A DNA stretch of 64,000 nt from Anolis carolinensis (taxonomy: Eukaryota). This document shows, one piece after another, positions 1,399-31,799 of this stretch. The notes beneath the pieces were generated by a model. It did not search any database, was not told the DNA's origin, and saw only the letters and a list, made by a program, of their open reading frames with translations. Made by a program: the position numbers and the translations under genes. Within the stretch, counting starts at the first letter, position 1, and every line of letters begins with the position of its first letter. The stretch spans positions 136,028,622 to 136,092,621 of the forward strand of contig NC_085844.1 of the NCBI RefSeq assembly GCF_035594765.1, given 5' to 3'.

Positions 1399-1413
1399 AT
1401 GGATGCTGAACAG
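1399..1413 (+). CDS. pseudo-kinesin coding exon 1 (MDAEQ)
   Basis: ATCATGG Kozak context, in-frame TGA just upstream, donor CAG|gtgggt. Confidence 0.6.
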
Positions 1414-4400
1414 GTGGGTTTCATCTATAGACTAAAACAGATGGATTAAGGCAATTGGGGTTTTACAGAGAAAGCAGTTGCTATCTTTGAGCACCTGACT
1501 CTCTGTTGCTCACCTGCTGTTTAGGGTGTTTGGTTTATATTAACATCTGCCAGGGTTTTGAACCACCTGCATGGCTGTTTGCTGTTGCTTCCTTTTAATC
1601 TTTCCTCTTTGATTTGGAAAGAACTGAAGCTTCTCCACAATATCTAATGTGCTTTCTTTCAGCCTGGAAAAGATGTACATGTCCAAGCTGCTGTGGGAAT
1701 CCGACGGATAGCAGGTACCTCATCCGGCAGTTGGAAGTCCCTTTACAGATGGCTGTCAACATGGCCAAAATGCTGGGTTGGTTTTCTTATGGAGAAAAGG
1801 GCAGACACAAAATCATGTTGGATATTCAATCTACCCCAGCTAAAAGGGATCTGAGTGTAGGCTTCTACATATTCCAAGCATCTGAGCAATTAACGAGGGA
1901 CTATGTGAATAGACGAATTGTTGGATTGAAAGGGTCACTTATGTTTGGATATTTGTGCTTTCTTAATAATTCATGTCCTTTTGAACTCATCAAGTATATT
2001 TTCCTTGCACAAGCTGCTGTTTTTCCTTATGGCATCAACCCCAACCACTTAAAAATACTGCAGTCCGATGAAGTTCTTTTCTCCCATATATCTTCTTATG
2101 TTACAGACATCTGTCACCATACGCCAGCCCGTGGCGGGGTGAGCACCCGTCAATTAAAAAAATAGACCCTGCTCGTTGCTAACCTAGCAACCCAAAAGAT
2201 AGTTGCATCTATCAAGTAGGAAATAAGGTACCACTTATAAAGTGGGGAGGCAAATTTAACTAATTTACGACGTTGGAATGAGGAAGTGCCATCACAGTGG
2301 ATGATGAAGCAGCTGCTCCCCCCTGTGGCCAGAATCGAACATCCCCTCAGGAGAAGGTTAAATTTCCTTTGCGTTTGTCTCGGCTCTATGTGTATATGGG
2401 CATTGAATGTTTGCCCTATATGTATATAATGTGATCCGCCCTAAGTCCCCTTCTGGGTGAGAAGGGCGGAATATAAATACTGTAAATAAATAAATAAATA
2501 CATGACTTTACATCATTGGCATGACACAGTGATACAATCATGGCAATGCTCTCCTACAATAAGCCCCACCCAGTTCCTCCATAATTTTAAATCATTGCTG
2601 AAATTACTTTCTGAGTACCTTACAGGAACGATTGCAGGAAGCCAAAGACTTTGCCTCCACATCCAGAGAGCTGGAAACAAATGATTATGGAGTTTCCTGC
2701 AGCCATGTTTTGATTCTGGCATCAGGTCACCTTCTCTGCATTGCCCCATCCTGAGGACGGACATTGAAACAACAGCAGGGAAATTAGAGCGGGGAGGGTG
2801 AATTTATTCTTGCTCCAGCCAGAAAGCTTGGGCCAGCCATGGGCAGTCCAAAATGGGAGGAGGAGATGATGACAGCATTTAAGGCAGATGCAGTCCTTCA
2901 AGGTTGTTTACCTGGGCCCTGGCCTAAACTGTAGACTTAAAAAAAGGTAAAGGTTTCCCCTGACATTAAGTCCAGTCATGTCTGACTCTGGGGGTTGGTG
3001 CTCATCTCCATTTCTAAGCCGAAGAGCCGGCGTTGTCCGTAGACACCTCCAAGGTCATGTGGCTGGCATGACTGCATGGAGTGCCGTTACCTTCCCGCCA
3101 GAGCGGTACCTATTGATCTACTCACATTGTCATGTTTTCAAACTGCTAGGTTGGCAGAAGTTGGAGCTAACAGTGGCCGCTCATGCTGCTCCCGGGGTTT
3201 GAACCTGGGACCTTTCGGTCTGCAAGTGCAGCAGCTCAGTGCTTTAACACACTTCGCCACCGGGGCTCCTTTTAACTGTAGACTTAGGGTCATCCTAAGT
3301 CTGAAACGACTTAAAGGCACACAACAAGAACCATTCTTATTAACTTGACTATCAGCCAAAAACAGGCCCACACTGCTAAGGACCCCCGATTTAGGGAATA
3401 AAGGAATGTATGTTTTGATTATGGAAAGAGATCCGAGGATAATAAAACATTTATGTACCACAATGAATGGATGTCAGGGCGGGGACAGTTCATTGTGATA
3501 CATCAGTGAAAGAGAGGGATATTTATCCAAGTAGGATGAACTGTTAACTCAGGAAGAAACAAAACAAAACATCTTAATATGATATGAGTTGAAACATGTT
3601 GTAGAACAATAATTAAAATGGGATCAAAATGCAGCCATTAGAAAATCTCACAATATATTAGTTTTAGGGGGAGAGGGAACAGAGAGTGCTTTATTTTCTA
3701 ATATGTCTGTCTAATGTTCCTCCCAGGCTCCTTGAAGCAAGAAAGCTTTGTGGTGGTGAACGAAGATTCTAACTGTTTAATATTCATCAATAAGGCAGAA
3801 AAAGGGGTGCAGGTAATAAACCTTCCAGTGACAGCTTCTAGAGCAAAGAAGAGCAATAACTAGCAGGATAATAGAAAGCAACAAGGCAACCCTGTTTATG
3901 TAGGAACAAGTATTAATTAGTTTAATTGGATTTACATGTTTAAAATGCTGAGAATCGAACACATTGCACTGATGGTTTCAAAGATTTATTGGAAATGGAT
4001 GAAAGGAATTAAATATTAATTAAGAATTAAAGAGAGGAATGAGATTATAGGCAAACCTCAAAAAACAAAGCTTCTGACAAAATAGTCTTTATACCCACCC
4101 AGCCTCCTTTCTTCCCATCCTGTGTATTGCTAAATATTTTAGCACATTGAGGGATGAAAAAGACTAGCTGATGAAAAATAGGTTTTCAGTGTATAGCAAC
4201 ATCTCTGCAGTAAACAGTGCAATAAAACTGGGGAAAGTATGAAATTCTGCTTTGGCAATTCTACTACAGCACTGTGTGCTTGCCTGCAACAAGTGAGGTG
4301 AACAGCAGCTGCTGCCAGAAATTCTTACTATGCATACATGAATTGCTGAACAGAGAGGGGAAAAAAAGCAAAGCAGAGAAGTCTATCTCACAAGCTACCC

Positions 4401-7400
4401 CAGACAGTTAAAATGTCTGGTTACCAAAATAGAAGTCATATGAAAAAAGCAGCCTGATGAAAAACACATCATTCATTGAAATATTTTGCAGGAAGCTTGC
4501 ATGTGGTCTTGAAGGTACAATTTATTTTCTTTAGTTTGGAAAGTCTTATTTGGCTTGCTTATTTCATTTCACACAAAATATTATTGATGTTGGATAAAAC
4601 ATTGGCTGAACCATGTTGAACTACCAGTACTCTTCTTTGTCATGTTAGAATAGCCTATTCCTATTGTTTCTATGTTACTTCTAGATGTAAAGTTCAGCAC
4701 ATTTATTTTGTTAGTTATGGACTTCATCACATAAAATAAAATCAGCATTTCTACACTCTTAAGAAACTGCACCTTCACACGACACAAGCTTCAAATGTGG
4801 GGTAGAGATATCTTGCTGTTTCTAAAGTGTGGGTTTTCCTGTCGATTCCTAAGCCAGTTGGGCAAGCAACTTATTCTTCAATTCCCCATATAGAAACGTG
4901 AAAAAAATGCCCAATTTAACATGTGATGGGAATTCCCCCTCACCCATTTGTAAACATAATGATGATGTCGCTATGGAGGGAGGAGCCGAAATGGGCAGTA
5001 TTGATTCCTTTCTTCTGCCATTACCATTTTTGGATTGAGGAGGCATGGTAAACATTCAAAGATATTCAAAAAATTCTGGAGAAAAACCCCACGCTTGACT
5101 CTGAGCTCCCTCTTTCAACATCCCCCCCCCACTCTTTTTGTTATCTTCCTTCTCGTAAAAGTCCTTTTGAAGTATTACCTACTAGTTTCAATTGCCTCTA
5201 TGAAATTCCTGCGGTGCTATCAGGCATTTGTCTTGCCTATCAAAAGGCTAGCAGAAAAAGGCATAAGAGAGTTTAAGCTTCATTTCCCCTCTCCCTCTTG
5301 TTCTCAATTCTGCAACATAAGGATAAACCCTCTACATATGTTGTTGTGAGTTTTTCGGGCTGTAAATTGAACTCCCAAGATGACAAAAGAATTTTTTTTA
5401 AAAGAAGAAAATGTGGAGGGATGATGGGAGTCTTTACTGTGTGATGGCAAATCAAACAGAAAAATACTAAAGAAATTGGAGAAGAAGAAGGGTGTGATGG
5501 GAGTAGAGAAATCATCTATCTAATTTCCAAACGGGGCTTTGCAAAGCTTAAGAGAAAACCAACTATCCCAAATGCTTTACATATTCTATGTGACGAAGTC
5601 CTAGGTTTCTATATAGATAAAACAAATGTAGCCATTAGAACTGGGGAAGTGCACAAAGGGAAGAGGGGATGTAGCAGGTGTATAAAGATGAATGCAACTA
5701 GGAGATGTGGTTATGGGGAGAACAGAGTGTGTGCTGGTACAGCTGTACCAGAAACTTCAACTTTATTTTCTTGCTGCAAATGTTTGCAATTATAGGACAG
5801 GCCACCTGTCAATCACCATTAAGTTTGGTTCCGCCCCTTGTCCAGGGCTCTGGGAGGGAAGGAGCCATTTTTAAGTTAGTCTCACTTAGGAAGCTCATCT
5901 ACAGGACGTAGACCAGCTCGTCCCGTAAAAAGCTTCATATTTCAAGAATACCAGGGATATTGACCATCCGAGGATACAGAACAACAGCACAGAAACATTT
6001 GCAAGCCTTGGCTGGTAGGTCCACTCGACAACCAGACGCACTTGGGAGTTGGCAGTGGGTCCCAGACCAGCTAGGCCCAGATAATAGATAGCCTGGGAGA
6101 GGTTATAAGAGGGTTTTCACAGTTATTCAAAGCCAATTGCCTGTCCTGTGGGGACAAGACTCCTTGAAGATTTATTATTTGTTCGTCAATAAAGACTTTG
6201 TTATTTCTTTAAAGACTTCAAGGCCATCTCTTCAGGGAAATTCCTCAACAACCTTTCTTTAGGCAGCCTGGCTTCCCGCTGGGTGTAAAGCATACATCCT
6301 ATATAATAGACAATCAGTCACAGGCCCAGCGCGTGACAGAATAGAGTGAGTAAGCGAAAGGAAGATGTTTAGCTAGGTTTGGGGAAGGAAAATGCAAAAA
6401 AAGTCAGAGGATAAAACAGGAAGAAAATTAATGCTGGCACCAGCTGCAGGGATGAAATGAGAGGAGAAAGAAAGGAAAGAATGTATTTAGTCAGAATTAT
6501 ATGTACAGAAGGAGAAAAAGGATGAGAAACAGAAAACAGTGGCATCAAGAATTAAAACGACTTATGTGCCTAAGTAGAAGTGAACAAGGAAACAATTCAT
6601 ACCAGACTTTCTGCTAACAATTGTATATCCACATGTGTTTCCGATCATGATAAAATATACTGTGGCTTCAGCCATTTAGGGTGGGAAATGTGGGAAGCAA
6701 AACTTAGAAAAATTAATAATAAAGGAAAATCAACAAGACAGCAGTTCAATAGTACCATGTTTAACAATTGTATCTCACTATTTTCCCATTGGAGTAGCTT
6801 CACACAATTCCTTTAAAAATATGAACAAGAAAGGAAGATGGACAGCTGAAGGACAACATGAAAGATGCTGGAAGGCTATGTTGCCCAAAAGGTCTAAGTG
6901 CTAATTTGTGTACTGTGGCTCTCTTTCCAGGAAGGATGCTTCACCATTAATGGAGTCTACACTTTGGAAACTGGTCAGGTACACAATATCCTGAATGCTG
7001 TACTCTACAGCAGATGATATGTAAAGGTTAATACTAAACTTTTTAAACCAGGGAACAGAGTCAAAAATTTCAGACAAAGCTCCATTTGCCCTCTCAAAAA
7101 TGGCTGCAATGCTATGTGTGGCCAGTCATAAAACACACACACACTACTATCCTCATGGGCACTGCACTGGGGACATCACAGCAAAATTGGTAAGTCAGAA
7201 TGTGTCAATGGGTGCAGCATGTCCCTGCTGGGATTTCTGATTTTAAATGGGGGGGAGGTATGTGATTTTTATACGATGAAATCATAGAATCATAGAATCA
7301 TAGAATAGTAGAGTTGGAAGAGACCTCATGGGCCATCCAGTCCAACCCCCTGCCAAGAAGCAGAAATCGCATTCAAATCGCATTCAAATCTAGTATAATA

Positions 7401-10400
7401 CATTTATGGACCAGAGAGAGAGCAGAAACCAAGAATCTCATGAACTGCCATGGCAATGTGAGTGGGGATGATAGTTAAGCAAAGACCTCCTGGGTCAGAC
7501 CAATGACTTAAGTAGTCTTTAATTCCACTTTTCATAGTGGTCTACCATGTATATCTGGGAGGCTTCAATGTACTTGTTCCCAACCGCTGGTATCTGGTGG
7601 CACACTGCATCTGAATAAAAAAGCACAATACAACCATTGTATTAAGTAGCCATTGATAGACATCTCCTCTACCTATGTCTAATCCCCTAGAAAGCCACTG
7701 AAATCGGTGAGATCATCATAAGTCCTATATAGCAACCAATTAATTACACATTCTGGGAAGAATCATTTCCTTTGGTCTGCTCTGAATATCCTCCTGGTTT
7801 CTTTCATTGAGAAACCCTGAATCCTACTACTATGCGAAACAAAGAAATGAAACTTTCATAGGCTTTTATCTTCCAGCTCTTCCTCTTGTATCAGCCATAG
7901 CTGCTCTCCATTTTACTGTAAAGGAACTTCTCAGGGTACTCATCCCTGTTCTAAAAATAGATACAACTGATTGGATAACTCCTTTAAAATTCAGATTAAA
8001 GCTCAGCTTTGGTTCACTTCTTTGCTGGCCAGCTGTCGCTGCTTATAGTCACCCTTAAAAAATCCAAGACACAGACAGTGACTATAATAATAGGTTGACC
8101 ATCAGCAACACAGAAGGAGATTTCAAAAATCTGAGCCATTTCTTGGTTTGGGGGAAGATCCTTGTACCCTATTTTAAGTTTGTTTTCCTGGTAACAAAGA
8201 TAGATGTGCCAACAGTTTCACTCAAATTTGGCACGTATTGAAATATTTTAATTAGTTCCAAAATTAGTTTGGGGAAGAATATTTCCATTCAAATTCCTTT
8301 CTGAAGATTCTGAAATCTGAAACGTGTACAAAGGCATGTACACAGAAGTTGAATAAGTGGGGTACAGTACAGGGTACAGATGTATGGAGACAGAGAAGGA
8401 AGATGATGGCTGTGGCTGCCTTGTCTAATGGTTTATGGTGCTGGTTGACAGAACATGTAAATCTATTTTTTAACAAGACAAGGCCAGCATTCGTTATGGG
8501 TATTTGGGTGTCTGCCTGACTGTACCAGATGTGGGTGCTGGACCAGCTCCAGGAGCTGTTAATTCAAGATAGCATCTTTGTCCCCCACTCTAGGACAAGC
8601 TCTTCCTGGAACAACTGCAACCTCTGATGGCCATGGTGTCTCTTGGCTACAGCGCATCCTTGCTGGTGTATGATACTCATCACTGTGGAGTTCAGGCACA
8701 AATCCAATACTTAGTCCAGAAGGTAAGAGGAGAATTTAGCTGCAGAATTAAGTAGCGACAGAATCAAATAACAGCAATTGTTTTTCCATATAGGATCTAC
8801 CACCTTGGCCAATCAATTTATATGTAGACATTTCCCCCATAATAAGAGAGTGACAACTTTGTTACTGATTCTGAAATATGTCAGCAATCTTTTGCAAAGC
8901 CCTATCCTAGCACTTCATTGCGGTGGTGGTGATAAACTCCGAAAGTTCTGAGAGCTATGTTAGCAGAGCGCAAAATCTAACAGATGCAACCAAGCTGATA
9001 AGGATTCGTGTAGCCTCACCTGTAGGTTATGTTTCTACATACATGGACGGGCTTAACACAGTTCATAACTAGATAGTTGGAAGCCAGTTTGTTAATAGAA
9101 AGCTGAACTGAACTGGCCAAAGTAACTATGAACACAATTCACCTTGGAGTTTGATGAGATGGAGATCAAACACAATGCAGTGGAAAATAATATCTGCTCC
9201 AATCCCTTTATTTTGATCACAGCAGTCCCATCTAGTGGTTTCAAAGTACAAAGAGAAGAAAAACTATTGACAGTGTGGCCAGGAAGGACATAGTCAAGCA
9301 CATTAACCTAACCTCACTGTCCAAATATTGTGTGCAAGAACATTAATGGTGTTTTGTCAATCCACAAATGAAAGACTTCCATTTTATTACACCACATATC
9401 AAGACAACTAGTAGATGAGGTCAAAAATACTAGATTGCAATGATTGACACCCTGTCATTCTCTGTATGCTTGCTAATAATAAACTGAAGGACAACCATTT
9501 CATAGAAAACAGAACGGAAGAACTACATATAGCAAGTACACCTTGGTTTGTCATATACTGGTATTTCTGTTTCTCCTATCTGTCATTAGGTAATAGAATA
9601 TGTGTTCCAAGAATCCAGTTCTCCCCCCAATAATTCTCAGTTTCTCAAAACCATCAGCTTTGTTCAGGTAAGCAACTGTGCCAGGATGACCTGAGAGCTA
9701 TGTATCCAGTACTTTTCTCTATAAGATAAAACAGACCTTACAATGTTACTACTCTGACCCATGGGATTACCATCCCAAGCATATGAATGCTATATGGTCT
9801 ATAACTATTTTGTTCTCATTTTCTACCTAAATGACGATAGTTATCCCCATATAATCGTAATTGTTATTTTCAGTCTTCAGATCTCCCATTATTTGCATCT
9901 ACCTCCTTCTAGATTTACTCAGATGGACAGGCCAAAGACCTGCTTCATCCAGAAAACCCAGCCCTGCAGGTGATGGATCTTCCTCCACTGGGACTGTAAG
10001 CATCTGGCTCTAGTGTTTCTATGTGTTTGATGATAAGCAAAGGAAATAGTAGCACAATGAATTCCAGATAATCTGGGATCTAAGGGTTTATCACACAAGG
10101 GTGATAAATCACAATTGCAGCAGGATGATAGTTTCTTTGGCTAGGACCTATCACACAATTATGTGTCTTTTCCACTGCATTTCCATCATTGTTAGAATGT
10201 ATCATTTCACTGAAAGGAAAAACCATTAATGGCTCCAATATCACTGCTATTCAACTATTGTTTGTGGTGTGATGGTGTGGATCCTATTCCTCCCTGTTAT
10301 GAAACAGAGTTAAGTCACTTTATGTATGGCATCCAAAGAGGGCATTGTGGTATACAAGTACAACATTTATTTTATTCTATTCCCCAGGGTCTCTTTTCCT

Positions 10401-13400
10401 TTTAAAATTTATTTTACCATCGTTGGGCAGTTGCACTGCCATGGTGGGCTGCAATTATGACACTACCCTTCATTTCCAAGATGCATCAAAACTGCATGTT
10501 TGTGAAGTGTAATTAAATACAGTAGAGTCTCGCTTATCCAACGTAATTGGGCCGGCAGAATGTTGGATAAGCAAATATATTGGATAATAGGGAGAGATAA
10601 AGGAAAAGCCTATTAAACATTAAATTAGGTTATGATTTTATAAATGAAGCACCAAAACATCATGTTATACAACAAATTTGTCAGAAAAAGTAGTTCAGTA
10701 CACAGTCATGCTATGTAGTAATTACTGTATTTACGAATTTAGCACCAAAATATCATGATGTATTGAAAACATTGACTACAAAAACGCGTTGGATAATCCA
10801 GAACGTTGGATAAGCGAGTGTTGGATAAGTGAGACTCTACTGTAACATACACATGCTAAGTAGGACAGACATGGATAGGAATATAGGATCAAGTAAAGTA
10901 GTGCATAAGACTTACTGTGGGAACAATCATCACCAGTAGTACCATAATGCTATTGGAGATAAGGTGTGAAGACAACTCTTTCCATACCAGTATGTTTCTA
11001 TTTATCATAACAGGCTGGTGTTATAAAGCTAGTCTGATAAAGAACAATGTAAGCTAGAGAACAGGATTTTAATGGTTTAGAAAATATTTTAATGCTTGGT
11101 TTGCACATATAAAAGAGTAGCTTGTGGAAAGATTAATATATCCTTGAATAGACATGAAGAAATAAAAGAATGTCACAACCAGTGTGCTATGAAAATTATT
11201 TGCTCATCTGAATTAGGGATATTAAGGAATCTAGGCCAACAAGTTCTGCCTTTCCATAACTAAAGCCCTGGAAAGAGAAATGTGATAACAGAAGATGTGA
11301 ACAGGACTAGGTGTTTAAAAGGCAACCTTTTCAGACCACCCACTTTATGTTTATACCTTAGCTAAATATATCAGCACTGTCAATAATCTCTGCTTCTCTC
11401 TTTAGGGTTGTGAAAGAGGCAACTGAAATTGTTGTGACTGATTCACAAGCTGCCACTCACTTCTATCACTGTGGAGTCTCAGCGTACCACAGTTGTTTGG
11501 AGCAATCTTTTCAAAAGTCACACAATACCATGTAAGGGCTACAGGAAGGCGGGGGAAGTAATTAGAAGGGGAAGAAACCAGGACATCTATAGTGTCTGGT
11601 GGTCCCGTCTCAGTGGAGTAAAACAGAGTGGATTCAGCACCACACTGACATGGAACACACCAGTTTGAACTGAACACATGCAGCCAGCTTTGTACGGGAT
11701 TCTGTCCATTCATATTGTTGAGACGTATTGGAGACCTTGGCCCCATCTATAATGCAGTTTCAGACTATAGTTTAACTGCAATATATGGCAGTGTACAGGC
11801 ATGTAGCTGGGGGGGGGGGGGGCTTGAGGAGCTTCAGCCCCCCCCTCCTGAAATTCTCAGGGTGGTCCGCGAAAAGGACTTATATTTATTATTTAAACTG
11901 TTATGTTTATTCATATCATGATCTGATCACTATGCTCAATATATCCCATATGCATGGGGGTATTGGGATAACGATACAAAAGGTTTGCTAGGGCAAATCC
12001 TCTCTCACTCAGACTCAGCCCCCCCCCCCCCCCCCCGAACCAAAATCCCAGCCCCTCCCGAACCAAAATCCTGGCTACGGGCCTGGCAGTGTAGATTCAA
12101 ATAATTTAGTTCAATGCATTTAAACTGCATTCTGAAACTGCATTATATGGCAGTGTAGATGGGGCCCTTGTCTCTGAGGCAGGATATTCTAAATCTGCTA
12201 AGCTGTGCCAAACTCCAGACTAAATTGCACTTGGAGAGCCTCCAGTCTGAAGTCTGACGAAGATGCCATCAAACATGTCCTGGTCAGAAAAATCAGGGCT
12301 GCCTCAAGGTAAGACACTTACAGTAGAATTGCTTTGTTCCACTCACTTACAGTAAGCAGGATGAAAACAGCTGGCACAACTCTCCAGAAAATCAGACAGG
12401 CCCCAATGCTTTCTTGGTGTATGTATGTTTGTGGGGGCCCTACACAGCATATCATTCCACAAAAAGTGGCCTTGGAGATTACCAGTGCTTCTCCATGGCC
12501 ATGTCAAATAAAATGGCATGCTCTACCACTGCTCTTCTTACTCTTTTTCACACCTCTTTGAATTAGTTCAACAAGAAATCCCAGTGCAAAGTCGCAACCA
12601 AGATGCTGCAGCATTGAACTGTGGCCTTCCTGTGTGGTAAAGTAACATTGAAGTGAGATTATCTTTCCTTTGCCTACATACCTAGGAATTTTTTGGGCAG
12701 TGTGAATGGCGCATGGCAGGATGCACATACAAAACAAGAGAGCTATATCCCTCAATGCATGAGAAGTCCACTGCAATTCCTATTATAGCTCACAGTGGGA
12801 AATACATTCTTTTCTTTTCCTAGGAGCTTTGGCTCTGGGAGCATGTCTGACTTCTGGGACTTATTCAAGGTTTCCTGCTTAGACAGTAAAAATAAAGGGG
12901 AACCAGGCAGTAAGCAGACTTCCCTTCAGACATCCTTCACTTGCGGGAAGGAGTCTTAAAAACTGCTGAGGTGCTAATTCAGCACATGCTCTGCCAAGAA
13001 TTGTATTATTAATTCTGTTTATACCATGCCTTTCCTCCAAAGAGCTCAATGGTGGGTATGTGGCTCTTTTCCTCAATACAACACTATGAGACAGATCAGT
13101 CAGAAAAAAGTGACTGGTCCAAGCTCATCCAGAGAGTTGAATGTTCATTGGATTCTAGTGTCTATATGAAATTGCCAATTCTAAGTAGAACAGAAATATT
13201 GAATCATTTAGATTTATTTATGTGTTAACTGATCAATCAGCTACTGGTTCAGTGGTTAAAATCTTAATCACACAAGTCCCAGTTCAAGACTAATGCCAGG
13301 TGTGAAATTCTAAAAGTCTAGCAGCCAATTCCCCCACCCCGCAAAAAAATCTGGAACCCTTCCTAGGCAGTAACAGACCTTAAAAAGCGCCCCTCCCCCC

Positions 13401-16400
13401 AGATATGAAAAAGAACCAAAACTGGTGACTAGTCCATATCCAGTTTCTTTTCTTTTTGCTCAGTGAAAGAAAACAACAACACAAAAATAATGCTCTTTGA
13501 AGCACCCAGCAGCACCCAGCAGTCCTAAAAGGGGTTCTCCCAGGGTAACCGTCTTGGCTGAGAAGGGAGCATGGCTTCCTAGCCCATTTTTTTACTGCAT
13601 GAATATTTTTTTCAGTTGCTTTCACTTGTTAATGTGCGGTGCAAAAAAAACCTCAGCTCAGCCAGCAGGGATGGAGATGGGACATCTATTACGGGCTGTG
13701 CTTCCTTGCCACAAAAGAAAATGATTAACCATATCTCCCCCAATCATTGGATTGCTTTCCTTCTCAGCATGCAAAGACAAAACTGGGGCCATTCTCTCCC
13801 AAAGGGTTAATCTCATTGAAATACTAATGAAATTTTGATTTTAATGGGATTTACCTGCGAGTAAGTCTGCCTCCAGTTTGCAAGAGTGCATCTACTCTGT
13901 AGAATTAAAGCAATTTGGCACCACTTTAGCTGGCATGACTCAATGCTATTGAATCCTGGGAGCTGTGGTTTGGTGACATGCCAGCACACTTTGGCAGGGA
14001 AGGCTGAAGACCTTGTAAAAATAAAACTCCCATGATGTAACAAGGTTACAAATATATGTAGCCTCTTTTACATTGTTATTAAACTATAGCTCCCATCAGC
14101 AATGGCTATGGCCAGTGGAAACTCCAGCCCAACAAGATTCCTATCCTTGCTTTAGAACAGTGTGGTCCAACCTGTGGCCTGTGGACCGCATGCGGCCCAC
14201 TAATTCATTTTTGTTGGCCCTTGCCCTTCTTACTGGAAAAGATTTTAATTATGTAATTAAATATTAATATTTTAATTATGTAGTGGAGCCCCGATGGCGA
14301 AGTGTGTTAAAGCACTGAGCTGCTGAACTTGCAGACCGAAAGGTCCCAGGTTCAAACCCCGGGAGCGGCGTGAGCGGCCGCTGTTAGCTCCAGCCTCTGC
14401 CAACCTAGCAGTTCGAAAACATGTGAATGTGAGTAGATCAATTGGTACCGCTCAGGCGGGAAGATAACGGCGCTCCATGCAGTCATGCCGGCCACATGAC
14501 CTTGGAGGTGTCTACAGACAATGCCGGCTCTTCAGCTTAGAAATGGAGATGAGTACCAACCCCCAGAGTCAGACATGACTGGACTTAATGTCAGGGGAAA
14601 CCTTTACATTTACCTATTTTAATTATGTAATTCAATATTAATTATATAATTCGTTTTCTTTCTGGAATGTCTCTGGCCCTCACATTCCTATACTAAAATT
14701 TGATTGGCCCTCAGGTAACTAAAGGTTGGACCACACTGCTTTAGAGGAAGGATATTACATACATTGAGACACTCCAGCAGGAAAGTTATCTCTTTGTTGC
14801 CACATAATGAAGTGAATGTACTGTACTTGGAGATGTGTCTCCCTGGCATATCTTAAGACACAGGCAAGCTGATCTTGAGAAAGACAATCTTTTGATCATG
14901 GCTGTTTAAGCCTTTAAAGATAAGTACCCCTACTTTGAATGGGGCTTAGAAATATAGTAGGATAGTCAAGAAAACTTCTTCAGAATCTATGAAATGTGAC
15001 TCTGCTTGGCGGTAGTAGTTAAGAGTTTTGGCAGTTGTGTTGTTCATGAGCTAAATCTTCCAGATCCAATTCAACTGTAGCACCACAAGTAACAAATCAC
15101 AAAGGCCTGTTGTATTAGAATGTGCATGGAACATGTACATTACCGTGGTAGGTTTAGCCTTCTTGAATTACAACACACAGAGAACTATATGCACAGATGC
15201 TTCTTTCCCCACATGTTTAGGGCCATGCATTTTATGGATCTGATGTAACCACAGAAACAATGGTAACATGTACAGCTCCCTTCTGTGAAAATGTGCCATC
15301 ATATATTACCCTTTCGCATCTTATTACTATTCCACTACACTGTGGGGACAGATATGAAAACTGTAACAGAAATGATCATGATAGAGTCAAAAAGAAAAGC
15401 TGAATTGCAAAGAGGAACAGCTGTCTTACCTAATATGTACAATACAAGAATGAGATATTAGCAGGGAACTTAATACACAGCAATATACTGCCCAGACTTA
15501 ACTGCTTACCTCTCTCGCTAAAATGTAGCATCCTCTTTACCATCACCATTGAGACAAAACTGGCAGAGGGTCAGGAACTTCAGCGTGCTACTGTCCGGAT
15601 CTTTGAGTTCCTTGGAGGAAATGAGCAGTCTTCCACTGATCCGTGAGTATGGAGTTCTGAACAGAGGTTGGAAAAGTGAATTTTTGGATTATATTTCCTA
15701 GTTTTGTTTTTGCTAGCTAAGATGGTTGGGGAATCAAAGGTAATGCTATCCAAAAACTAATTTTTCTGAAGTCTGGGCAAATACTCATTCTCTCTTGATG
15801 TCTCAGCCTAATTAATGCTACACCTTTCATGTGTTTAGATATCCCATGTGGTTACAAGATGACTTATTCCTTGCTACTTTTTTCCCTGTCCAGCTTTTTT
15901 CCTTTTTCTTGGGCTTCATCTGCTGTGTCCCTTCTCCCTGAAGCAGGATTTCTCTCTTGGATTTTGAAGCAACTGTTGGAAGATAATACGCTTACATTTC
16001 TGCTGTTGTGCCTGACCCTGCCAGGTTGGTTATTGTCTATATGGCTGCCTTGATCTTGATAAGGGCAAAGGATCTCTCTACCTTGATTTTAGGGTATCTT
16101 GAGAACAGGGGAAGGAAAATCAATCTCACATTTACTCTTCCTTGCATATGAATTTTTGGAACCTCAAGTTCTCTCACTGAATATGAAACAACTTGTAAAT
16201 ATGAATACATTTGCACAAAATCAGCAGAAACAAAATTATCAGCTGCCTATACTAGACATATTTAAGATATAAAACTATTCTTAACTTGGAGATCAACATT
16301 TTTTCCAAATAACTGTTGGCAAATTTGAGAAATCTCTCAGAAAAAAGGAAATAGCAACTTTTTAGCCAACAGCATGATTGAATATAAAAGGATTCAGAGT

Positions 16401-19400
16401 TTTAAGACTCGAGCATATAGAGCTCTGGACTAGTATCGATTTCTCCCACCATTTGACATCTTGAGCTTTTTCATTTCTAAATATTAGGAAATATGAAAAT
16501 GTTAGCAATAAAACAAGCTAAAAAAATTGTCAACCATCATCATAACCACCACAATTTATATTTTGTGTTTCTCCCATATGGGACTCAAAGTGTGTTACGA
16601 TCGTTTCAAAAATAGCAAAAAAATATACCAAATATAAAAGTTAAAAATAAAATTAAACTATCAATATTAAAACCAATTTCAAAATATACTTATGAAAAAT
16701 CAGCAGACAAAATACAGTCCTATAAGAGAGCATCATTGTGCAAGGCCAGCCACTTGAGCAATTTTCAAATGTCTGCAAAATAAAGAAGTCTTACCATGCC
16801 AGTCTAACTATCCTTAGGAGTTCCAAAGCCTGGGAATAAACTACAGACAGGCTCATATAGGAAAATGCGGTCTTTCAGATAATCTGGACCTGAGCAGTAC
16901 AGTGTTTTAAAGATCGCAATCAACACTTTGAATTAGACTGGAAAACAAGTTACTAGCCAGTGGAATCGTTGGAACAAGAGAGTTGTGTGCTGCATGTAAT
17001 CATCTTCAGTTAACAATCTGGCTGCAGTTCTTTGGACCAGTTGATGTTTCCAAACAATCTTCAAAGACAGCCCCACATAGAGTGCATTACAGCAAGTCAG
17101 CCAGGATATAACTATGGCATTAATCACTGTGATCAGCCCCACTCTGAGAAAGATTTACTGGCTCTACTGTGAAATGTGTCTCTTTACATGGTTTTGAATG
17201 TACACTCCTACTTTGTTTAAGCTACTATGCAACAGCCCATCTGAAGAAAACACTTTGCCTGTCTCCTCCTGGAACTCTAGATGAGAAAATGGGGCCCCTT
17301 GGGGTGTCATCCAACTCTTTCATTTAGGAATTTAGCAGGAGAGTGTAAAGCATTAACAAAAATTAAACATACTAAATAAACCAAATGTAAAATGAATTAC
17401 AGTCCAAGACAGGAGGAAATCAGTTGTTCACTGGTGATGCCTACTGCCATATCCAGTGTTCTGTTTGGAGTATATTTCCTCAAATATCATGGCTTTCCTA
17501 CTGCAAAATACAACAAAATGCACAAAATACATCATGCAAACTTTTAAAATTTCACTGGCCTTTTCATCAAGCAAGCAAGAGAGTTGAAATCATACAAGAG
17601 AAGAAAAAGGCCAAAATTTTGTTTGTTGTCGTCAGTTAAGATGGTCAGGGGGTAGCCATGTAGGCAGAAGCCACTCCTCTTTTTGGCTGTCTGGGAGACA
17701 TAGAGTTATAAAATCCATGCAATAGAATTAAATTCCATTCAGACACAAAAAGTAACTTCCATTGAAACCCAGGCTCTTTCTATCCTGGTTAAGGTTACCT
17801 GTCCCTCTTCTAGACAGAGAACATTTCTGAATTTCTGAAGAAGTCTCTGTACTGTGACAGCTAGAAAAACCTTGTGGTGCGGTATAAGTAAAAACCTACC
17901 AATATAGCATCCCCAGATGAACAGTATAGAGGTTTCTTGAGAAATGTTATTGTGGCATACTATATGACAGACATGACTAACCCTAGAAAGGTTTAGTGCA
18001 TCCTCTATTTCACACAGTTTATAGTATAACAAATACCGATCATAATACTGTATTTCTTCAATTCTATGACACACTTTAGTTCCTTTAAACCTCTCTAAAA
18101 ATGGGGTACATCTTATGTATTGTTGTTGGTGATGGTGGTACTGAAATTAGAGTGTCTTACAATCAATGGCATCTTACAATTGAAGAAATGTAGTATATTA
18201 AGTGCAGGCAAGCAATACTGTTGCTCTAAGACTGGATGTTCACTATGCACAATGTTCACTAATCCTATTGTGAGGTGCAGCTGGACACATTTTTTTATTA
18301 GGAGAAATACAAATGATATATTCTTACGGGAACAAGAAGTTAGACATCTCCTTCTAGATTATTCCATGGATTAAGAAACTCAGAGATTGTACTATATTGA
18401 AGGGAATGTTTGAATCTTAGGAAAGGGTGTTGCACTCTTTTTAGATGCTCCCGGAAAAGAGATACTGTCTGCCATCTCACTGACAGAACAAGTGAGGACC
18501 GTAACAAAAAGAGTTGCACCAACCCACTGGGATCCCACTCAAGAAGCCCAGAAACGAAGAGAAGCAATAGGAGAGCTGAGAGCCCAGCTCTTCCTCAGTG
18601 ATCGGACAGAGCAGGACAGCAAGATCATTCAACTGGAAAAGGTGATAAAGGAGCTACAGGTAATATCGTTAAACATATAGCATCACCCTTTTACTATAAA
18701 TACTGAACAGTAATGCCCTAGCTGTGCAACTAATGTGCCAGAATTTTCGAGCAACTAGAGCTAAATTTGAGATATAATATTTTCGATTTATGAAATACTA
18801 TGGCTGATTAAATCTAGAATCCTGCAAATACTTAGCATAAGAATAAGTAGAGAATGATCTAATGTAGGCCCTATAGATGTGAAACATAGCCTTTCACACA
18901 GTTCATTCAGGCTACACATGGCTTCTTCCAGCTCTGTGATTCTATGTCGTGTTTGACCTCTAGCAACACTTTCTATTCAGTATCATGCTGCATTTCATAC
19001 TGCTGTCCTAGAGTTATTACTCTAGGTCAGCAGTAAAGTCCTCCTGAGTCCCCCTGGGGCAGTGGTTCCCAACCTGTGGTCCACAAGAACTAAAATACGG
19101 TATGCAGCCTCACTGTAAGGTAGTATCGATAATAACACAGCACAACCAAAAACATTTCTTCTTGGTGTCTTTGTTTTTAGGCAGGTTGCTGGAGTTATTT
19201 GAGGTGCTGATTCAGAAAATTGCATTGGATAGACCACATCAGCTCTAGATTATTAAATATGGTTTTCTGTGGGTGAGCAGATGTAGACTACTGGATGGTA
19301 TATATTCTGTATCTAATGCAATTTTCTGAATCAACACCCCAAATAACCAAACTAAATCTAGAGTTGACCAAAAACTGATTCATAACTCTTTTGGTACTAA

Positions 19401-22400
19401 TGTTGGAGAGTGGTCCCTAGTCAAAAAAAAAAAAAAAAAGGTTGGAAACCACTGCCCTGCGGAAATGGTGTGGCCTATAAATAACAACAACAACAACACT
19501 AAATGCATATTGTAAATGTACCTAGGCTTAATGATCATCAGCACATTTTCAAGTAGAAGATACTATGCATGAATCATGTACTGAATGAAGAAATGTTTCC
19601 CTTTGTTCTGACAATTAACAACATTCCATATTCTGCTTTCTAGTCTGAAGACAACTGACAAAAGTCAATTCTTTTTGCATTATTTATACCATGTAAACTG
19701 TATAATCCTTTACTGTTCTCAACAAAGTCATTTTTCTTAGACAGGTATATCTCAGAATTAAGTACAGTAGATATGTTCCCAGGCATAACTTCTTTGACAG
19801 AAAATTTAGTTTCAGAGGCAGAAACAGCATGGAAAGATTAAAGATACATTCTTACATCCTCCACAAAAGCAGTTCAACACATTTCAGCAAACTTTTAATC
19901 CCAAACTAATAAGCAGATGCAAAATAAAACAGCCAGCTCAGGTGTGCCTTGTAGAAGTTAAAAATAGGGTTTAAAAAAAAACCCTTCTATAAGTTACTTA
20001 AACATTTCACCCCAAGTGCATCCAGAAATGATTTTTTTTCCTTTCATGGGCCTCCATTTTATTGATTTTTAGTTTCAATTTATTAATTAAGATATGCTTG
20101 TATGGAAAACACTTTGATCTTTCTCCATATATGGTAGGTGTTCCAATGCCCTGTTGCTTTGGTTGATCTTTTCTGCACCTTTCCAAGTTTATAATGTCTT
20201 TTTAGAGATGGGGCATCCAGATGTGTATGATATATATATGTCAAACTATAGATTTGTATAAGATGTTAATACTGTAATTACTTTGTTTTTAAAAAATCAA
20301 ATCTCTTTCTTATTAACCCCCACCAAGTTCAAGCTAACATGACATGAAATCTGAATCTTGTTTTATTCCTGGGCTGAGAAATGAAAAATTGGATTTTAAA
20401 AATATTTTAGGTTTAAGGATGTCTCTTGAGGAGGTTGCATACAGTTATTTACTTAGCCTAAGTAATATTGATAAAATTAAAGTTCATTGGTATGTCTGCA
20501 CTGCTTTTTGTCTATTACTAAACAGAATAAAGTGACTTTTCAGTGAGGGACAGACAGAATGGTCATGGGGAACAGGGGTACATGAAAGCTACACAGAGAG
20601 TGATTATTTCCATTTGTTTTCATGCCAGCTGTTGGGGAATTATTTAGGGATAAGACAGACAAGGGGCATCTTGATAGTATATTGAGTATATTGAGTGGCG
20701 CAATGGGTTAAACCCTTGTGCCGGCTGAACTGCTGATCTGAAGGTTAGGTTGCTGATCTGAAGGTTGCCGGTTTGAATCTGACAGATGGGGTGAGCTCCC
20801 ATCTGTAAGCTCTAGCTTGCAGGGACATGAGAGATGCCTCCCAGCAACACATCCAGGCATCCCCTGGGAAATGTCTCTGTAGACGGCCAATTCTCTTACA
20901 CTGGAAGTGACTTGCAATATGTTCTCAGGTTACTTCTGACAGAATACATAATTATCTTGATGGTATTGTTAAATGTGTAGCAGCCTGTCTTGAAGCTAAT
21001 AGATTATATTGTTTTCAAGGTTCTGAAGAGTCAAAACTGGGAGAAAAAGAAGAAATCGGCAAATGAAATAAAGGAGAAAGATACTTCCTTCATAGCCAAA
21101 GTACATAAGTACCTGATCTCAATTTTTCACCCCTATTGTCTGATATGGTGGAACCAATAAACAAAAGTAGCCCTATCCATTTTTCACATCACAGTAACCA
21201 GAAACCCAAAGAGATGAAAAATAAATACAGTCTTGTTTACTCACCCTTTTCTCTCCGGCTGTTGAAGCACCCACCCTTTTCATTTGGAAAAAAACAAACT
21301 TTTCACCAGTGGATTATTTCATGTCAGTCTGAAATAAACAACATCATATGTGCGGGAATTACCTCTGCTTTCTCTTTCCTGCTCAGGGCTAGCACAGCAC
21401 TCTAGTGAGGTAAGGCGCTTCTGAGACAACTCACAGCATGTTGAAGGGAGGGAGCAAAAATCGCCTCCCATGTTGTTGTTTTAACTCATTTGAATGCATT
21501 TTGTCAGGTCCAAATCTGACAAAATGCATTCAAATTGATGATGGGGGGAAATCTGGGAATCAGCCATGGAGCCAGCAGAGACAAAATGATCCACATCAAG
21601 AGAAAGAGATAACAGGCCTGAAAACACATCTAGTACAAGAATTGGCTACTACTCACTGTTAAGGATTTTAGAAGATTCTCAAAAATAAATTCAATAAATG
21701 CAACATTCAGGTATATTTCCACACAAAGTACTGAAGGGAATCACCAATGTTGAAATCAATATGAATATGATTGTTAATTTTACTATACTTGATCTGGTAT
21801 AAATACCTTTAGTTTTTACAGACAGAGGATATAAAATATCTGGAAGGGAGATATTGGTAAGGAGATGCTGTTAGAGAAAATACATTCTAATTTTAAAATC
21901 GGGGTAGGATAGGCAAGTCAACATTTTTACCTCAACGTGTACAGTAAGAAATAGTGTCTGAAAAGTCTTTTCTTCTGCTAATTTGACAAATTTCTCTGTG
22001 GAAGGTGGCAGAAACCCAAATATCCAGTTTGGCCAAGTTGCTGACCAGGAAGAAGCTACATAAGACAAACAACTCACTATAGAAGACTATCACTCTAGAG
22101 ACCTGGTCCTGCACAGGGCCATTTCTACTTGGAAAGCCTGAAGTTTTGAAGCTTCACTTAGAATATAGTGTTGACACCTCATTCAGAAAATCTCCACATC
22201 ATTCATGACCCTCCAGATGTTTTTGCTTCTCAGTCTTATCAGCTCTATCCAGCACTGTCAGTAGTGAAGTTTCACAGAACTTGTAGCCCAAAGACATTTA
22301 GAGGACCACACCTCTTCTTTATAATATGGTTGCCATTTATTTTCTGGCAGGAATCTTGAGCCAGTTATAATGTTTTGGTGAAACCTTTTCCCATCTCGGT

Positions 22401-25400: not shown

Positions 25401-26730
25401 AATTGCCATGGCTGCCTCCTGTAGAACCCTGTTGACTGTAAGTTAAAGGAAACGGGAAGAGCTTTCTGGCTGAGTTGTGAAAACCCTTACCTAAACAGAA
25501 TACACCAGGATCACATTGGATGCTGCCATAGCAATAAAAGTGGAACCACAGTGCTATTAATTGGAGTGTGAAAATGTCCCTAGTGTTCTCCACTCTCTTG
25601 CCTCTGCATCTATATATTGATACTTGATTTTAACAGATTCTTAAAGTGTTTCATTTAATGGCCCACTGTAACATTTTCCCAACTCTTGTTAATCCCAACT
25701 AGAGTAGACTGAGTTGGAGTTACCTACATGTTTACTGTTCGCTGAAACTAACAGGATTTCAGAGAATCTACTCTTATACAAAGGCTGACTAGACTGATAT
25801 ACATTGATTTGTGTTTGGGTACACACTGAAATGTATATGGTTTGTGTATGTATTATGGTCCTAAGGTCAGTATCTTATGCAGCTGTCAGGGCCACAAATA
25901 TTGTGTATCTCCACACTAAAGGAAGAGAGCCATTTGGCAGAATTGACAAGATGGACAGTTTCGTTCAGGGGGATTCAGTGCAGTTGAGCAACAAGAGAGC
26001 TATACACATGTCCTGCTAAGGAATACTAAAGGAAGGCAGGGGATTTCTTATTGTCCTTTTCATCAACTATACAGAATAGTAATAAGGTGGGATGGTTAAA
26101 ACCCACGACACCATGGCCATTCTGAAGTATGATGTTTCAACCTCACCTCCATCCTAATGTGAAGACATAAATCTTCTATGAGGTCCAAGGGTGACCGAGC
26201 ATTCTTCTCCTCAACAAATCCTGTAAAAATAGAGTATCTCATGTGTTTCCAGTGAGAAAGGTAAGTTCACTGGCTATTTTTTGAGCTAAAGCAGCAATAA
26301 CTGAGTTGGGAGGGAAAGAGTATGCCTGCCTCGAGGGGAAGAAGAATGAGCCAAAGTTCAGCATACAAGCAGCTTGTATTTGAGGTTGCTTCTTGAATAG
26401 GGTAGAGGTATTTCAAAAACACAGCAGACCCACTTGTTACAGAGGGACTGTTCAGGAATTCTTTTCCTGGCCGGCATATCAATTTTCCTGTTGGGTAGTA
26501 GAAGCCTCTTTGGATCTCTTCTATAGGTATTCCGAGCATATAAGAGTCATGTTGAAGACCAGATGGATGCCCTTGAAAAGCAATATCGAAAGCTGCTCAA
26601 GGAATCCCTCCAGGATGCCATCTCCCTCTCAGTTCAGAACCAACAACTGCGAGTTCAGAAGCAACTGGATTTCACAGACACAGCAACCCAGACAGACTTT
26701 CAAACTCTAAAGAACTATCCCATGACCTAA
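1399..26730 (+). CDS. Divergent kinesin motor-like (pseudo-kinesin) coiled-coil protein, 15 coding exons, ~557 aa
   Basis: Phase-consistent GT-AG exons: 1399-1413, 1663-1714, 3727-3812, 6931-6978, 8594-8722, 9590-9667, 9913-9995, 11406-11531, 15529-15642, 15894-16024, 18445-18659, 21020-21100, 22893-23036, 23963-24130, 26527-26730. Kinesin elements appear in the correct order (VQAAVGIR; FTINGVY; LGYSASLLVY; ISFVQIYSD..KDLL; LFTITIE; LSWILKQLLEDN; EILSAISL). Confidence 0.8.
1663..1714 (+). CDS. pseudo-kinesin exon 2 (PGKDVHVQAAVGIRRIA; beta1-like)
   Basis: tttctttcag acceptor, GCAG|gtacct donor, resembles kinesin V(K/Q)VAVRIRP. Confidence 0.65.
2124..2500 (+). mobile_element. SINE with L2-derived 3' tail
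   Basis: Ends tgtgatccgccc...gagaagggcggaatataaat(AAAT)n; the same tail recurs at ~34775-34860 and ~35100-35165. Confidence 0.6.
2941..3269 (-). mobile_element. Sauria SINE, full length
   Basis: tRNA-like head with A/B boxes, (ACCTTT)n tail, 13-bp TSD aactgtagactta (2927-2939 / 3274-3286). Confidence 0.9.
3727..3812 (+). CDS. pseudo-kinesin exon 3 (GSLKQESFVVVNEDSNCLIFINKAEKGVQ)
   Basis: cctcccag acceptor, CAG|gtaata donor, phase 1 to 0. Confidence 0.75.
5800..6338 (+). mobile_element. Possible solo LTR
   Basis: TATA-like at ~6103, AATAAA at ~6188, ends GTGACA; 5' end and TSD not resolved. Confidence 0.3.
6931..6978 (+). CDS. pseudo-kinesin exon 4 (EGCFTINGVYTLETGQ)
   Basis: ctctttccag acceptor, CAG|gtacac donor, matches FxFDxVF...Q. 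Confidence 0.8.
7281..7380 (-). mobile_element. CR1 LINE 3' end
   Basis: (ATCATAGA)n tail followed by gagttggaagagacctcatgggccatccagtcc. Confidence 0.8.
8594..8722 (+). CDS. pseudo-kinesin exon 5 (degenerate P-loop exon)
   Basis: DKLFLEQLQPLMAMVSLGYSASLLVYDTHHCGVQAQIQYLVQK; AAG|gtaaga donor. Confidence 0.85.
9590..9667 (+). CDS. pseudo-kinesin exon 6 (VIEYVFQESSSPPNNSQFLKTISFVQ)
   Basis: cattag acceptor, CAG|gtaagc donor. Confidence 0.85.
9913..9995 (+). CDS. pseudo-kinesin exon 7 (IYSDGQAKDLLHPENPALQVMDLPPLGL)
   Basis: matches kinesin IYNE..RDLL; CT|gtaagc donor. Confidence 0.85.
10520..10842. mobile_element. Tc1/pogo (Tigger-like) MITE, complete
   Basis: TIRs CAGTAGAGTCTC(G/A)CTTATCCAA, TA TSD. 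Confidence 0.9.
11406..11531 (+). CDS. pseudo-kinesin exon 8 (VVKEATEIVVTDSQAA...QKSHNT)
   Basis: ctctctttag acceptor, AT|gtaagg donor, matches V.GLTE..V.S. Confidence 0.85.
11796..12085. mobile_element. hAT-type MITE nested in a palindromic MITE (11739-12165)
   Basis: TIRs CAGGCATGTAGC / GCTACGGGCCTG, perfect 8-bp TSD gcagtgta. Confidence 0.85.
14158..14738. mobile_element. hAT-type MITE containing a Sauria SINE
   Basis: 15-bp TIR cagtgtggtccaacc, 8-bp TSD ctttagaa/ctttagag. Confidence 0.8.
14285..14614 (+). mobile_element. Sauria SINE, full length
   Basis: A box TGGCGAAGTG, B box GGTTCAAACCC, 15-bp TSD tattttaattatgta (14268-14282 / 14615-14629). Confidence 0.9.
15529..15642 (+). CDS. 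pseudo-kinesin exon 9 (ILFTITIETK...VRIFEFLGGNEQ; degenerate switch II)
   Basis: matches AIFTI.VE ... L.LVDLAGSE; CC|gtgagt donor. Confidence 0.85.
15894..16024 (+). CDS. pseudo-kinesin exon 10 (...PEAGFLSWILKQLLEDNTLTFLLLCLTLP)
   Basis: matches SKLTRLLQDSLGGNSKT.MI.CISP; canonical splice sites. Confidence 0.8.
16760..17145 (-). mobile_element. L2 LINE fragment
   Basis: Degenerate L2 ORF2 C-terminus (CNALYVGL...QLVQRTAARLLT...HW). Confidence 0.7.
18445..18659 (+). CDS. pseudo-kinesin exon 11 (alpha6, neck linker, neck coil)
   Basis: EILSAISLTEQVRTVTKRVAPTHWDP then AQKRREAIGELRAQL; CAG|gtaata donor. Confidence 0.85.
19060..19455. mobile_element. hAT-type MITE
   Basis: TIRs cagtggttcccaacc / ggttggaaaccactg. 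Confidence 0.7.
20695..20940 (+). mobile_element. Degenerate tRNA-derived (Sauria-like) SINE
   Basis: gtggcgcaatgggttaaac head; tctgtagacggcca core. Confidence 0.6.
21020..21100 (+). CDS. pseudo-kinesin exon 12 (VLKSQNWEKKKKSANEIKEKDTSFIAK)
   Basis: ttttcaag acceptor; the donor AAA|gtacat is weaker, so the 3' end is less certain. Confidence 0.65.
22596..22850. mobile_element. Tc1/pogo MITE, internally deleted
   Basis: Same TIRs as 10520-10842. Confidence 0.85.
22893..23036 (+). CDS. pseudo-kinesin exon 13 (coiled coil)
   Basis: long pyrimidine tract, AAG|gtgaga donor, FSLAKTKKQNLQKQHQILIQQELSSMEKELE. Confidence 0.8.
23963..24130 (+). CDS. pseudo-kinesin exon 14 (coiled coil)
   Basis: LYMEALQKEQEEAEKDLEKLYQEYQHEAKAQKQHFLQ; CAG|gtcagc donor. 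Confidence 0.8.
24750..25166. mobile_element. Tigger-like MITE
   Basis: TA-caggcagtcccc ... ggagactgccta-TA termini. Confidence 0.65.
26527..26730 (+). CDS. pseudo-kinesin terminal exon (coiled coil plus DTATQTD, TAA)
   Basis: ctctatag acceptor; VFRAYKSHVEDQMDALEKQYRKLLKESLQDAISLSVQNQQLRVQKQLDFTDTATQTDFQTLKNYPMT*. Confidence 0.85.
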   Translation, partial: VFRAYKSHVEDQMDALEKQYRKLLKESLQDAISLSVQNQQLRVQKQLDFTDTATQTDFQTLKNYPMT

Positions 26731-31214: not shown

Positions 31215-31799
31215 TGCTGTGATGAGGAGAGGCAAGTAGAAAGGTCAATCTATAACCTTTTAGAGAAGAAAATACAAATGTTGACCTTTTAACATCATCT
31301 TCATGGAAACAAGTTTATGACATGTTTAATGAGTAAAATCAGCAAAAGAGTAACTGATGGTGAGATGCACATGTCAGTTAAATATTTATGCATGATTGAA
31401 GGGAAAGGGATATTTCAAATATGAACAAACCAAAGCAGCGGTATTTGATAGGTTCTAGTCTTAAGCACAAAAGCATAATGGCCTAACCACTGTCCTTAAT
31501 ACCATAAGAATGATAAATATATCAGAGAAAAAGAAACACAGCTGTTCAAGCAAATATACTAAAAGTATCCAAGTCCCAGCATGGCTGAAAAAGGAACCAT
31601 AGCTTTCATGATATAATGAAATGAGAATAATTGCAATCAGACCAGCTGAAATGTCACACTCCTCCGTTATATCCACTTTCCTAGCAAATATGAACAGGGA
31701 GCCAAACATTTAAGACCAAGATAGACTTGCATTAGTTGACAAATTCTAAGATGAGAAGCAGTATTCCCTGGAGTGTATCACTGCATGGGGAGTCCACTT

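Follow-up and report, generated by a model that had tools for sequence, protein, structure and literature searches.

A constrained pseudo-kinesin gene beside SLC35A4 in Anolis carolinensis and its animal-wide family

Why would a lizard keep an intact gene for a kinesin whose head lacks its motor motifs? The question is raised by a 64-kb stretch of the Anolis carolinensis genome (contig NC_085844.1, positions 136,028,622 to 136,092,621; hereafter the window, which contains zero N), in which an original prediction described a hidden gene of 15 exons encoding a catalytically dead kinesin with a non-motor role. Our best reading, for which we find the case evenly poised, is that the gene encodes a conserved, expressed pseudo-kinesin acting as a non-motor coiled-coil scaffold or adaptor.

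The 15 exons span 1399-26730 (+), all 14 introns are of the GT..AG type, and the joined model of 1674 nucleotides encodes 557 amino acids with a single terminal stop; the peptides quoted in the prediction all map to the plus strand, at 1681-18503. On a crude splice-site score, the donors of the 14 introns rank in the 83rd-100th percentile among all GT sites, and 13 acceptors (that of exon 10 not counted) in the 84th-100th percentile among all AG sites. The RefSeq protein XP_016848564.1 (isoform X1) is identical to the model and maps back onto exactly these exons, while a second Anolis RefSeq protein matches exons 3-15 letter for letter. The predicted frame is thereby confirmed, but the gene is already annotated and hence not hidden; it carries the automatic name 'kinesin-like protein KIF17' or 'KIF17-like'.

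Fold and motifs of the motor domain

Homologue searches of the model were run with single exons, and full-length and fold searches with database records, including XP_016848564.1. No kinesin Pfam match was obtained when single exons were scanned, because they are too short. The AlphaFold model, run on a 52-sequence alignment (predicted local distance difference test (pLDDT) 85.3, predicted template modelling score (pTM) 0.88), has its strands and helices in the complete kinesin order and, after them, helices of the neck coil and of coiled coil 1 (CC1). The top Foldseek matches are full-length KLP-6 (E 9e-24) and autoinhibited KIF13B (E 6e-23); VIA gave Z 27.6 across 347 residues against KLP-6, Z 27-28 against active kinesins and Z 19.1 against Vik1. 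The kinesin layout originally proposed is supported; the protein has the motor-domain fold and PF00225 homology of the kinesin superfamily.

Motif retention was scored against the intact sponge orthologue. The P-loop (GxxxxGKT/S) retains one of eight residues, switch I (SSRSH) one of five and the YRDSKLT motif of L12-alpha5 one of eight; switch II has gone from DLAGSE to EFLGGN, in which glycine alone of the six residues is kept and aspartate is replaced by glutamate. The claim that all three nucleotide motifs are lost is thus upheld for both P-loop and switch I and tempered by one glycine in switch II. Loss of microtubule-binding elements comes in addition to the losses originally described. 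The L11-alpha4-L12 region, from switch II to alpha5, has 33 residues against 54 in the sponge (21 fewer) and a net charge of -4 against +3, and alpha4 is predicted at only seven residues, with alpha5 and alpha6 still predicted. Head positions G85, D145, E171 and E214 vary little or not at all in the family alignment. An alternative in-frame acceptor at 15807 was considered as the source of a missing alpha4 exon and rejected; the 29 residues that it would add do not resemble alpha4, and the short segment is common to all vertebrate orthologues.

Because the nucleotide motifs are lost, we infer from established kinesin chemistry that the head would be incapable of binding or splitting ATP in the usual way, and the changes in its microtubule face suggest that its binding to microtubules would be weak or absent. 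A static, nucleotide-independent microtubule tether, working through a remodelled surface in the manner of Cos2 or KIF26, is decidedly improbable. KIF26 is a precedent for a non-motile tether of this kind. Cos2 may bind microtubules without ATP (PMC2867816), and the persistence of alpha5 and alpha6 is in keeping with such a role, but the short alpha4, the acidic face and the loss of YRDSK all speak against it. Since invertebrate members keep YRDSK, its loss in vertebrates looks like a loss of binding.

An orthologous series under constraint

With exon 11 as query, lizards, turtles, birds, frogs, axolotl and caecilians were matched. The tail as query reached teleosts (si:dkey-201i24.3) and one sponge, and the sponge tail in turn matched 58 proteins from sponges, cnidarians, molluscs, annelids, a nemertean, a bryozoan, echinoderms, a hemichordate and amphioxus. 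No arthropod, nematode or protist occurs by name among the 58, a weak absence because the search was word-seeded. The position is conserved as well: the gene lies tail-to-tail with SLC35A4 in a mudskipper, three further lizards, a turtle and an owl, and a CD14-like leucine-rich repeat gene is upstream in four of the amniotes compared, lizards, turtle and owl among them. By alignment column and phase, 9/14 Anolis introns match the sponge gene and 9/14 match amphioxus; the chance of such agreement is ~3e-10, even with a restricted site pool. A tree built by a quick method from family members only, with no outgroup kinesins, appears single-copy, and its vertebrate section agrees with the species tree. 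Many lizard families were matched but no named snake, despite good snake annotation, and gene loss in snakes is possible.

The original prediction recognised no named counterpart, yet names exist: apart from the RefSeq name, si:dkey-201i24.3 is a zebrafish-type name borne by the mudskipper orthologue, which likewise adjoins SLC35A4, and the mammalian copy is probably E230025N22Rik. The latter assignment comes from an ESM Atlas cluster, 'Riken cDNA E230025N22 gene', that matches by features (0.93, 190/256) and by tail structure, with no mammalian sequence aligned; the mouse gene presumably lies between Cd14 and Slc35a4. Automatic names for the family scatter across KIF17, KIF4, KIF3, KIF13, CENP-E and klp-20.

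Motor motifs are lost in stages along the series. Three sponges retain every one of them. In cnidarians and bilaterian invertebrates the P-loop, the greater part of switch II and YRDSK are mostly preserved, but switch I is altered and L11 shorter; amphioxus and sea urchin are without switch I. Teleosts and amphibians have lost YRDSK and have at most a remnant of the P-loop (GSQGSGKD in a caecilian), and reptiles and birds have none of the motor motifs. On these alignments switch I looks to have eroded first, and the P-loop and microtubule face later, in vertebrates. This order presumes that sponges keep the ancestral state, which we adopt because intact motifs are far more easily lost than regained. 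In a metatranscriptome member (L011:51-2024) the P-loop and switch II are likewise gone, and its long branch lies next to the vertebrates; the sequence may come from a tunicate, in which case the loss would be older, or its placement may reflect long-branch attraction.

Ratios of nonsynonymous to synonymous substitution rates (dN/dS) were calculated pairwise (NG86) for Anolis against four lizards and a turtle, and omega = 1 was examined by likelihood-ratio test. The ratio is 0.20-0.35 for the whole protein and 0.28-0.35 for the motor part, the latter matching that of the tail. Omega = 1 is rejected: fixing it lowers the log-likelihood (lnL) by ~150 units for the whole protein and by ~65 for the motor part (2 x lnL difference ~301 and ~131). 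The gene is constrained, though less than its neighbour SLC35A4, and the selection that had been proposed from the intact frame is borne out as purifying selection.

RNA contigs were taken from four public runs whose RNA nature was guessed only. One Anolis contig (X13 record 24) covers exons 13 > 12 > 11 gap-free, and a contig of another study (X12 record 17) splices exons 11 and 12, so that these junctions of the predicted model are found joined. The whole frame is present on single intron-free contigs in two other lizards. Loss of catalytic motifs and moderate divergence would suit a decaying pseudogene or a chance frame, but this explanation is extremely improbable and we reject it. With dN/dS at ~0.3 the gene is not a pseudogene; omega lies well below 1 and the orthologues are intact, and the open frame, the spliced contigs and the conserved position and introns all stand against decay.

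Family placement, tail and possible role

Against solved kinesins, the family profile scores highest with KIF1A and KIF13B, above OSM-3 and KIF3B. Taken alone, the sponge motor does not tell kinesin-2 and kinesin-3 apart (KIF1A 317, KIF3B 317 and KIF13B 315 bits), and the sponge neck coil-CC1 matches KIF13B best (E 2.5e-9). As in kinesin-3, a neck coil-CC1 tandem follows the motor, its TWEE motif matching KIF13B, and the Anolis model superposes on autoinhibited KLP-6 and KIF13B. Unlike kinesin-3, the family has no K-loop and a unique tail, its vertebrate members are without all catalytic motifs, and the FHA domain that follows CC1 in kinesin-3 was found in no family member scanned. Because the sponge motor is undecided between kinesin-2 and kinesin-3 and no FHA domain is present, we call this unnamed family kinesin-3-like, as it looks like an offshoot, and not a kinesin-3 member. 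A KIF17/kinesin-2 identity was rejected, since the profile prefers KIF1A and KIF13B over OSM-3 and KIF3B and the series of orthologues runs back to an invertebrate family of its own.

KIF26 and KIF7 are animal non-motile kinesins, and like Cos2 and VAB-8 they belong to other families. Cos2 and KIF26 still bind microtubules, and the Anolis orthologous group differs in keeping a graded series, from intact sponge to dead vertebrate; Cos2 and VAB-8 resemble it in that their kinesin heads are reused without motility (PMC2867816). Vik1 and Cik1 likewise have a kinesin fold without a nucleotide site (PMC4338441), and a partner subunit of their kind had been proposed beside a scaffold as the non-motor role. 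Such a protein would pair through the neck coil-CC1 or the stalk with an active kinesin, most likely a kinesin-3, tuning or inhibiting it. The retained neck coil-CC1, with the affinity of its sponge version for KIF13B, the overlap of the fold with Vik1 and the parallel loss of the active site (PMC4338441) all suit this explanation, which we nevertheless consider quite unlikely. Vik1 is an obligate partner of Kar3, and its head is C-terminal and of kinesin-14 origin; the Anolis head is N-terminal and of separate origin, with a microtubule face that is truncated and acidic. Vik1 also scores far under the active kinesins in VIA, and no paralogous partner turned up in what appears to be a single-copy gene tree. 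The analogy is weakened because the Vik1 head retains a microtubule-binding site and works as a heterodimer with Kar3 (PMC4338441), whereas the Anolis protein has a truncated face; the scaffold half of the proposal fits better.

Identity to invertebrate orthologues is highest in the tail core (45%), followed by the neck-CC1 (26%) and the motor (20%). The tail core (residues 488-532) is the best-kept part of the protein and is predicted as one long helix. The tail gave no Pfam or PDB match, and comparison with CCDC78/DUF4472 or any solved chain found none. Residues R326, R333, K362 and W366 are invariant or near-invariant. Whereas in fish, amphioxus and sponge the coil extends into a further exon, each of the 30 proteins checked from reptiles and birds terminates in a QT motif, most often of the form [D/E]-[R/K/H]-A-T-Q-T-D; among fish, amphibian and invertebrate proteins a terminal QT occurs in Xenopus only, and TQT in none. 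The LC8 consensus is [D/S]KX[T/V/I]Q[T/V][D/E], in a disordered segment beside a coil (PMC3078936), and the reptile and bird endings come close to it. The Anolis motif, DTATQTD, fits five of the six specified positions and lies beside the coil, modelled as a helix end. The Anolis stalk is 78 residues shorter than that of Sceloporus after the loss of two linker exons (Table 1).

It is unlikely that the tail alone functions, with the head a relic under folding selection in a slowly eroding gene that is dispensable in some lineages. Progressive motif loss, the two lost Anolis exons and the long vertebrate branches are all compatible with such erosion, as are the shorter mammalian cluster representative (482 amino acids), which is without a common Pfam match, the missing snake matches and a hare gene treated below. 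The whole head has nonetheless been retained since the teleost-tetrapod split, its dN/dS matches that of the tail, and its four conserved positions are invariant or nearly so.

The scaffold reading, which we prefer, would run as follows. The protein would neither move nor hydrolyse ATP, serving instead as a dimeric coiled-coil scaffold or adaptor whose ancient tail core would bind a partner inherited from the motor ancestor. The dead head would stay as a folded block packed on the neck coil-CC1, as in autoinhibited kinesin-3; in KLP-6 a tryptophan of CC1b inserts into the motor domain (PMC9314371). At its tail end the dimer would be clamped, in reptiles and birds, by the dynein light chain LC8. 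From the distribution of the family and the putative LC8 motif one may guess at a setting in the cilium, flagellum or centrosome; LC8 motifs are expanded in the ciliary and centrosomal system (10.1101/2023.09.15.557927). Somewhat more tentatively, and with the balance falling just short of even, we propose an animal-wide family that passed from a working motor in sponges through a switch-I-less form in cnidarians, molluscs, annelids, echinoderms and amphioxus to a vertebrate head binding neither nucleotide nor microtubule, which would now be a scaffold locked in the autoinhibited fold, with a novel tail domain and, additionally in reptiles and birds, a site for LC8.

Several observations weigh against this proposal. 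An alignment attempt gave no equivalence of W366 with W421 of KLP-6. The Anolis LC8-type motif has threonine, not lysine or arginine, at position -3, and the QT motif is modelled at a helix end where pLDDT drops from 85 to 64, although LC8 sites are normally disordered. The sequence searches retrieved neither a snake nor a mammal protein, and a hare gene named E230025N22Rik has dN/dS above 1 (PMC6065068). The dN/dS of SLC35A4 is 0.11-0.13, so that of the pseudo-kinesin is 2-3 times as high. Vik1 is reported to bind microtubules in an unconventional manner (PMC3384419), and for this reason loss of the usual microtubule face does not prove loss of binding.

A literature search, with subscription journals largely outside its reach, found no paper recognising the family, the dead motor, the tail domain or the intact orthologue in sponges; E230025N22Rik received passing mention only, and never together with 'kinesin'. 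Kinesin heads without catalysis have been described before (PMC4338441, PMC2867816), and the gene is already in databases. The standard kinesin classification discarded its 166 lowest-scoring sequences (PMC2867816). Heads so divergent fall out of kinesin surveys, and annotation pipelines give this family half a dozen wrong names. The gene would add one pseudo-motor to the vertebrate kinesin set. Its orthologous group forms a natural series, intact in sponge, without switch I in amphioxus and sea urchin, with a P-loop remnant in a caecilian and with nothing left in the lizard, which lets one ask by what route a motor turns into a pseudo-enzyme and what a kinesin head can do when it no longer uses ATP.

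Features of the locus and overlapping RNA

Table 1. Exons, motifs and neighbouring features of the pseudo-kinesin gene, in window positions
Feature	Position	Strand	Evidence or remark
Exon 1, start codon	1399..1413	+	15-nt first coding exon likewise in Sceloporus and Zootoca
Exon 2, motor beta1	1663..1714	+	Phase-1 intron common to sponge and amphioxus
Exon 3	3727..3812	+	Joined frame, RefSeq, intron comparison
Exon 4	6931..6978	+	48 nt, same length in sponge and amphioxus
Exon 5, alpha1-beta3-(P-loop)-alpha2	8594..8722	+	Joined frame, AlphaFold
Replaced P-loop, DTHHCGVQ instead of GQTGSGKT	8672..8695	+	1/8 residues kept; without Lys or Thr
Exon 6	9590..9667	+	78 nt, same length in sponge and amphioxus
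Exon 7, contains invariant D145	9913..9995	+	Joined frame, conservation
Exon 8, alpha3 and lost switch I (~11518-11531)	11406..11531	+	Joined frame, motif alignment
Exon 9, beta6-beta7; switch II remnant EFLGGN at 15605-15622	15529..15642	+	Joined frame, motif alignment
Exon 10, shortened alpha4/L12, alpha5, beta8; without YRDSK motif	15894..16024	+	AlphaFold, motif alignment
Exon 11, alpha6, neck linker, neck coil, CC1a	18445..18659	+	Joined frame, homologue search, RNA contigs
Exon 12, CC1b with near-invariant K362 and W366 (21038-21040)	21020..21100	+	RNA contigs, conservation
Dead linker-exon remnant 1	21508..21615	+	Coding in Sceloporus; GC in place of donor GT; skipped in sole spanning contig
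Dead linker-exon remnant 2	22005..22130	+	Coding in Sceloporus; in-frame stop; skipped
Exon 13, tail helix	22893..23036	+	Joined frame, RNA contig, AlphaFold
Exon 14, tail helix	23963..24130	+	Joined frame, AlphaFold
Exon 15, family-signature tail core (to ~26652) and stop	26527..26730	+	Joined frame, conservation
LC8/DYNLL-type motif DTATQTD	26677..26697	+	QT in 30/30 sauropsid orthologues; motif definition PMC3078936
SLC35A4, tail-to-tail neighbour outside the gene, marking conserved position	30240..31214	-	Synteny

SLC35A4 and an upstream 103-aa DUF4535 protein together occupy 30240-36529 (-), and the pair is called in fish, lizards, turtle and owl too. What we take to be an APBB3-like gene, from its N-terminus, starts at 41595 (+), head to head with SLC35A4. 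In Mauremys the RefSeq annotation merges CD14 with the pseudo-kinesin gene, probably by read-through or model error; this fusion confirms the CD14 neighbourhood.

In one contig exon 12 runs on into intron 12 (21100-21268), as intron retention, a short 3' end or a merger with antisense RNA would each produce. A contig also joins 21328 to 23924, and the removed stretch, 21329-23923, is a GT..AG intron when read on the minus strand, which therefore points to a spliced antisense RNA overlapping exon 14 and intron 12. Either a long read-through of SLC35A4 or an independent non-coding RNA could account for it.

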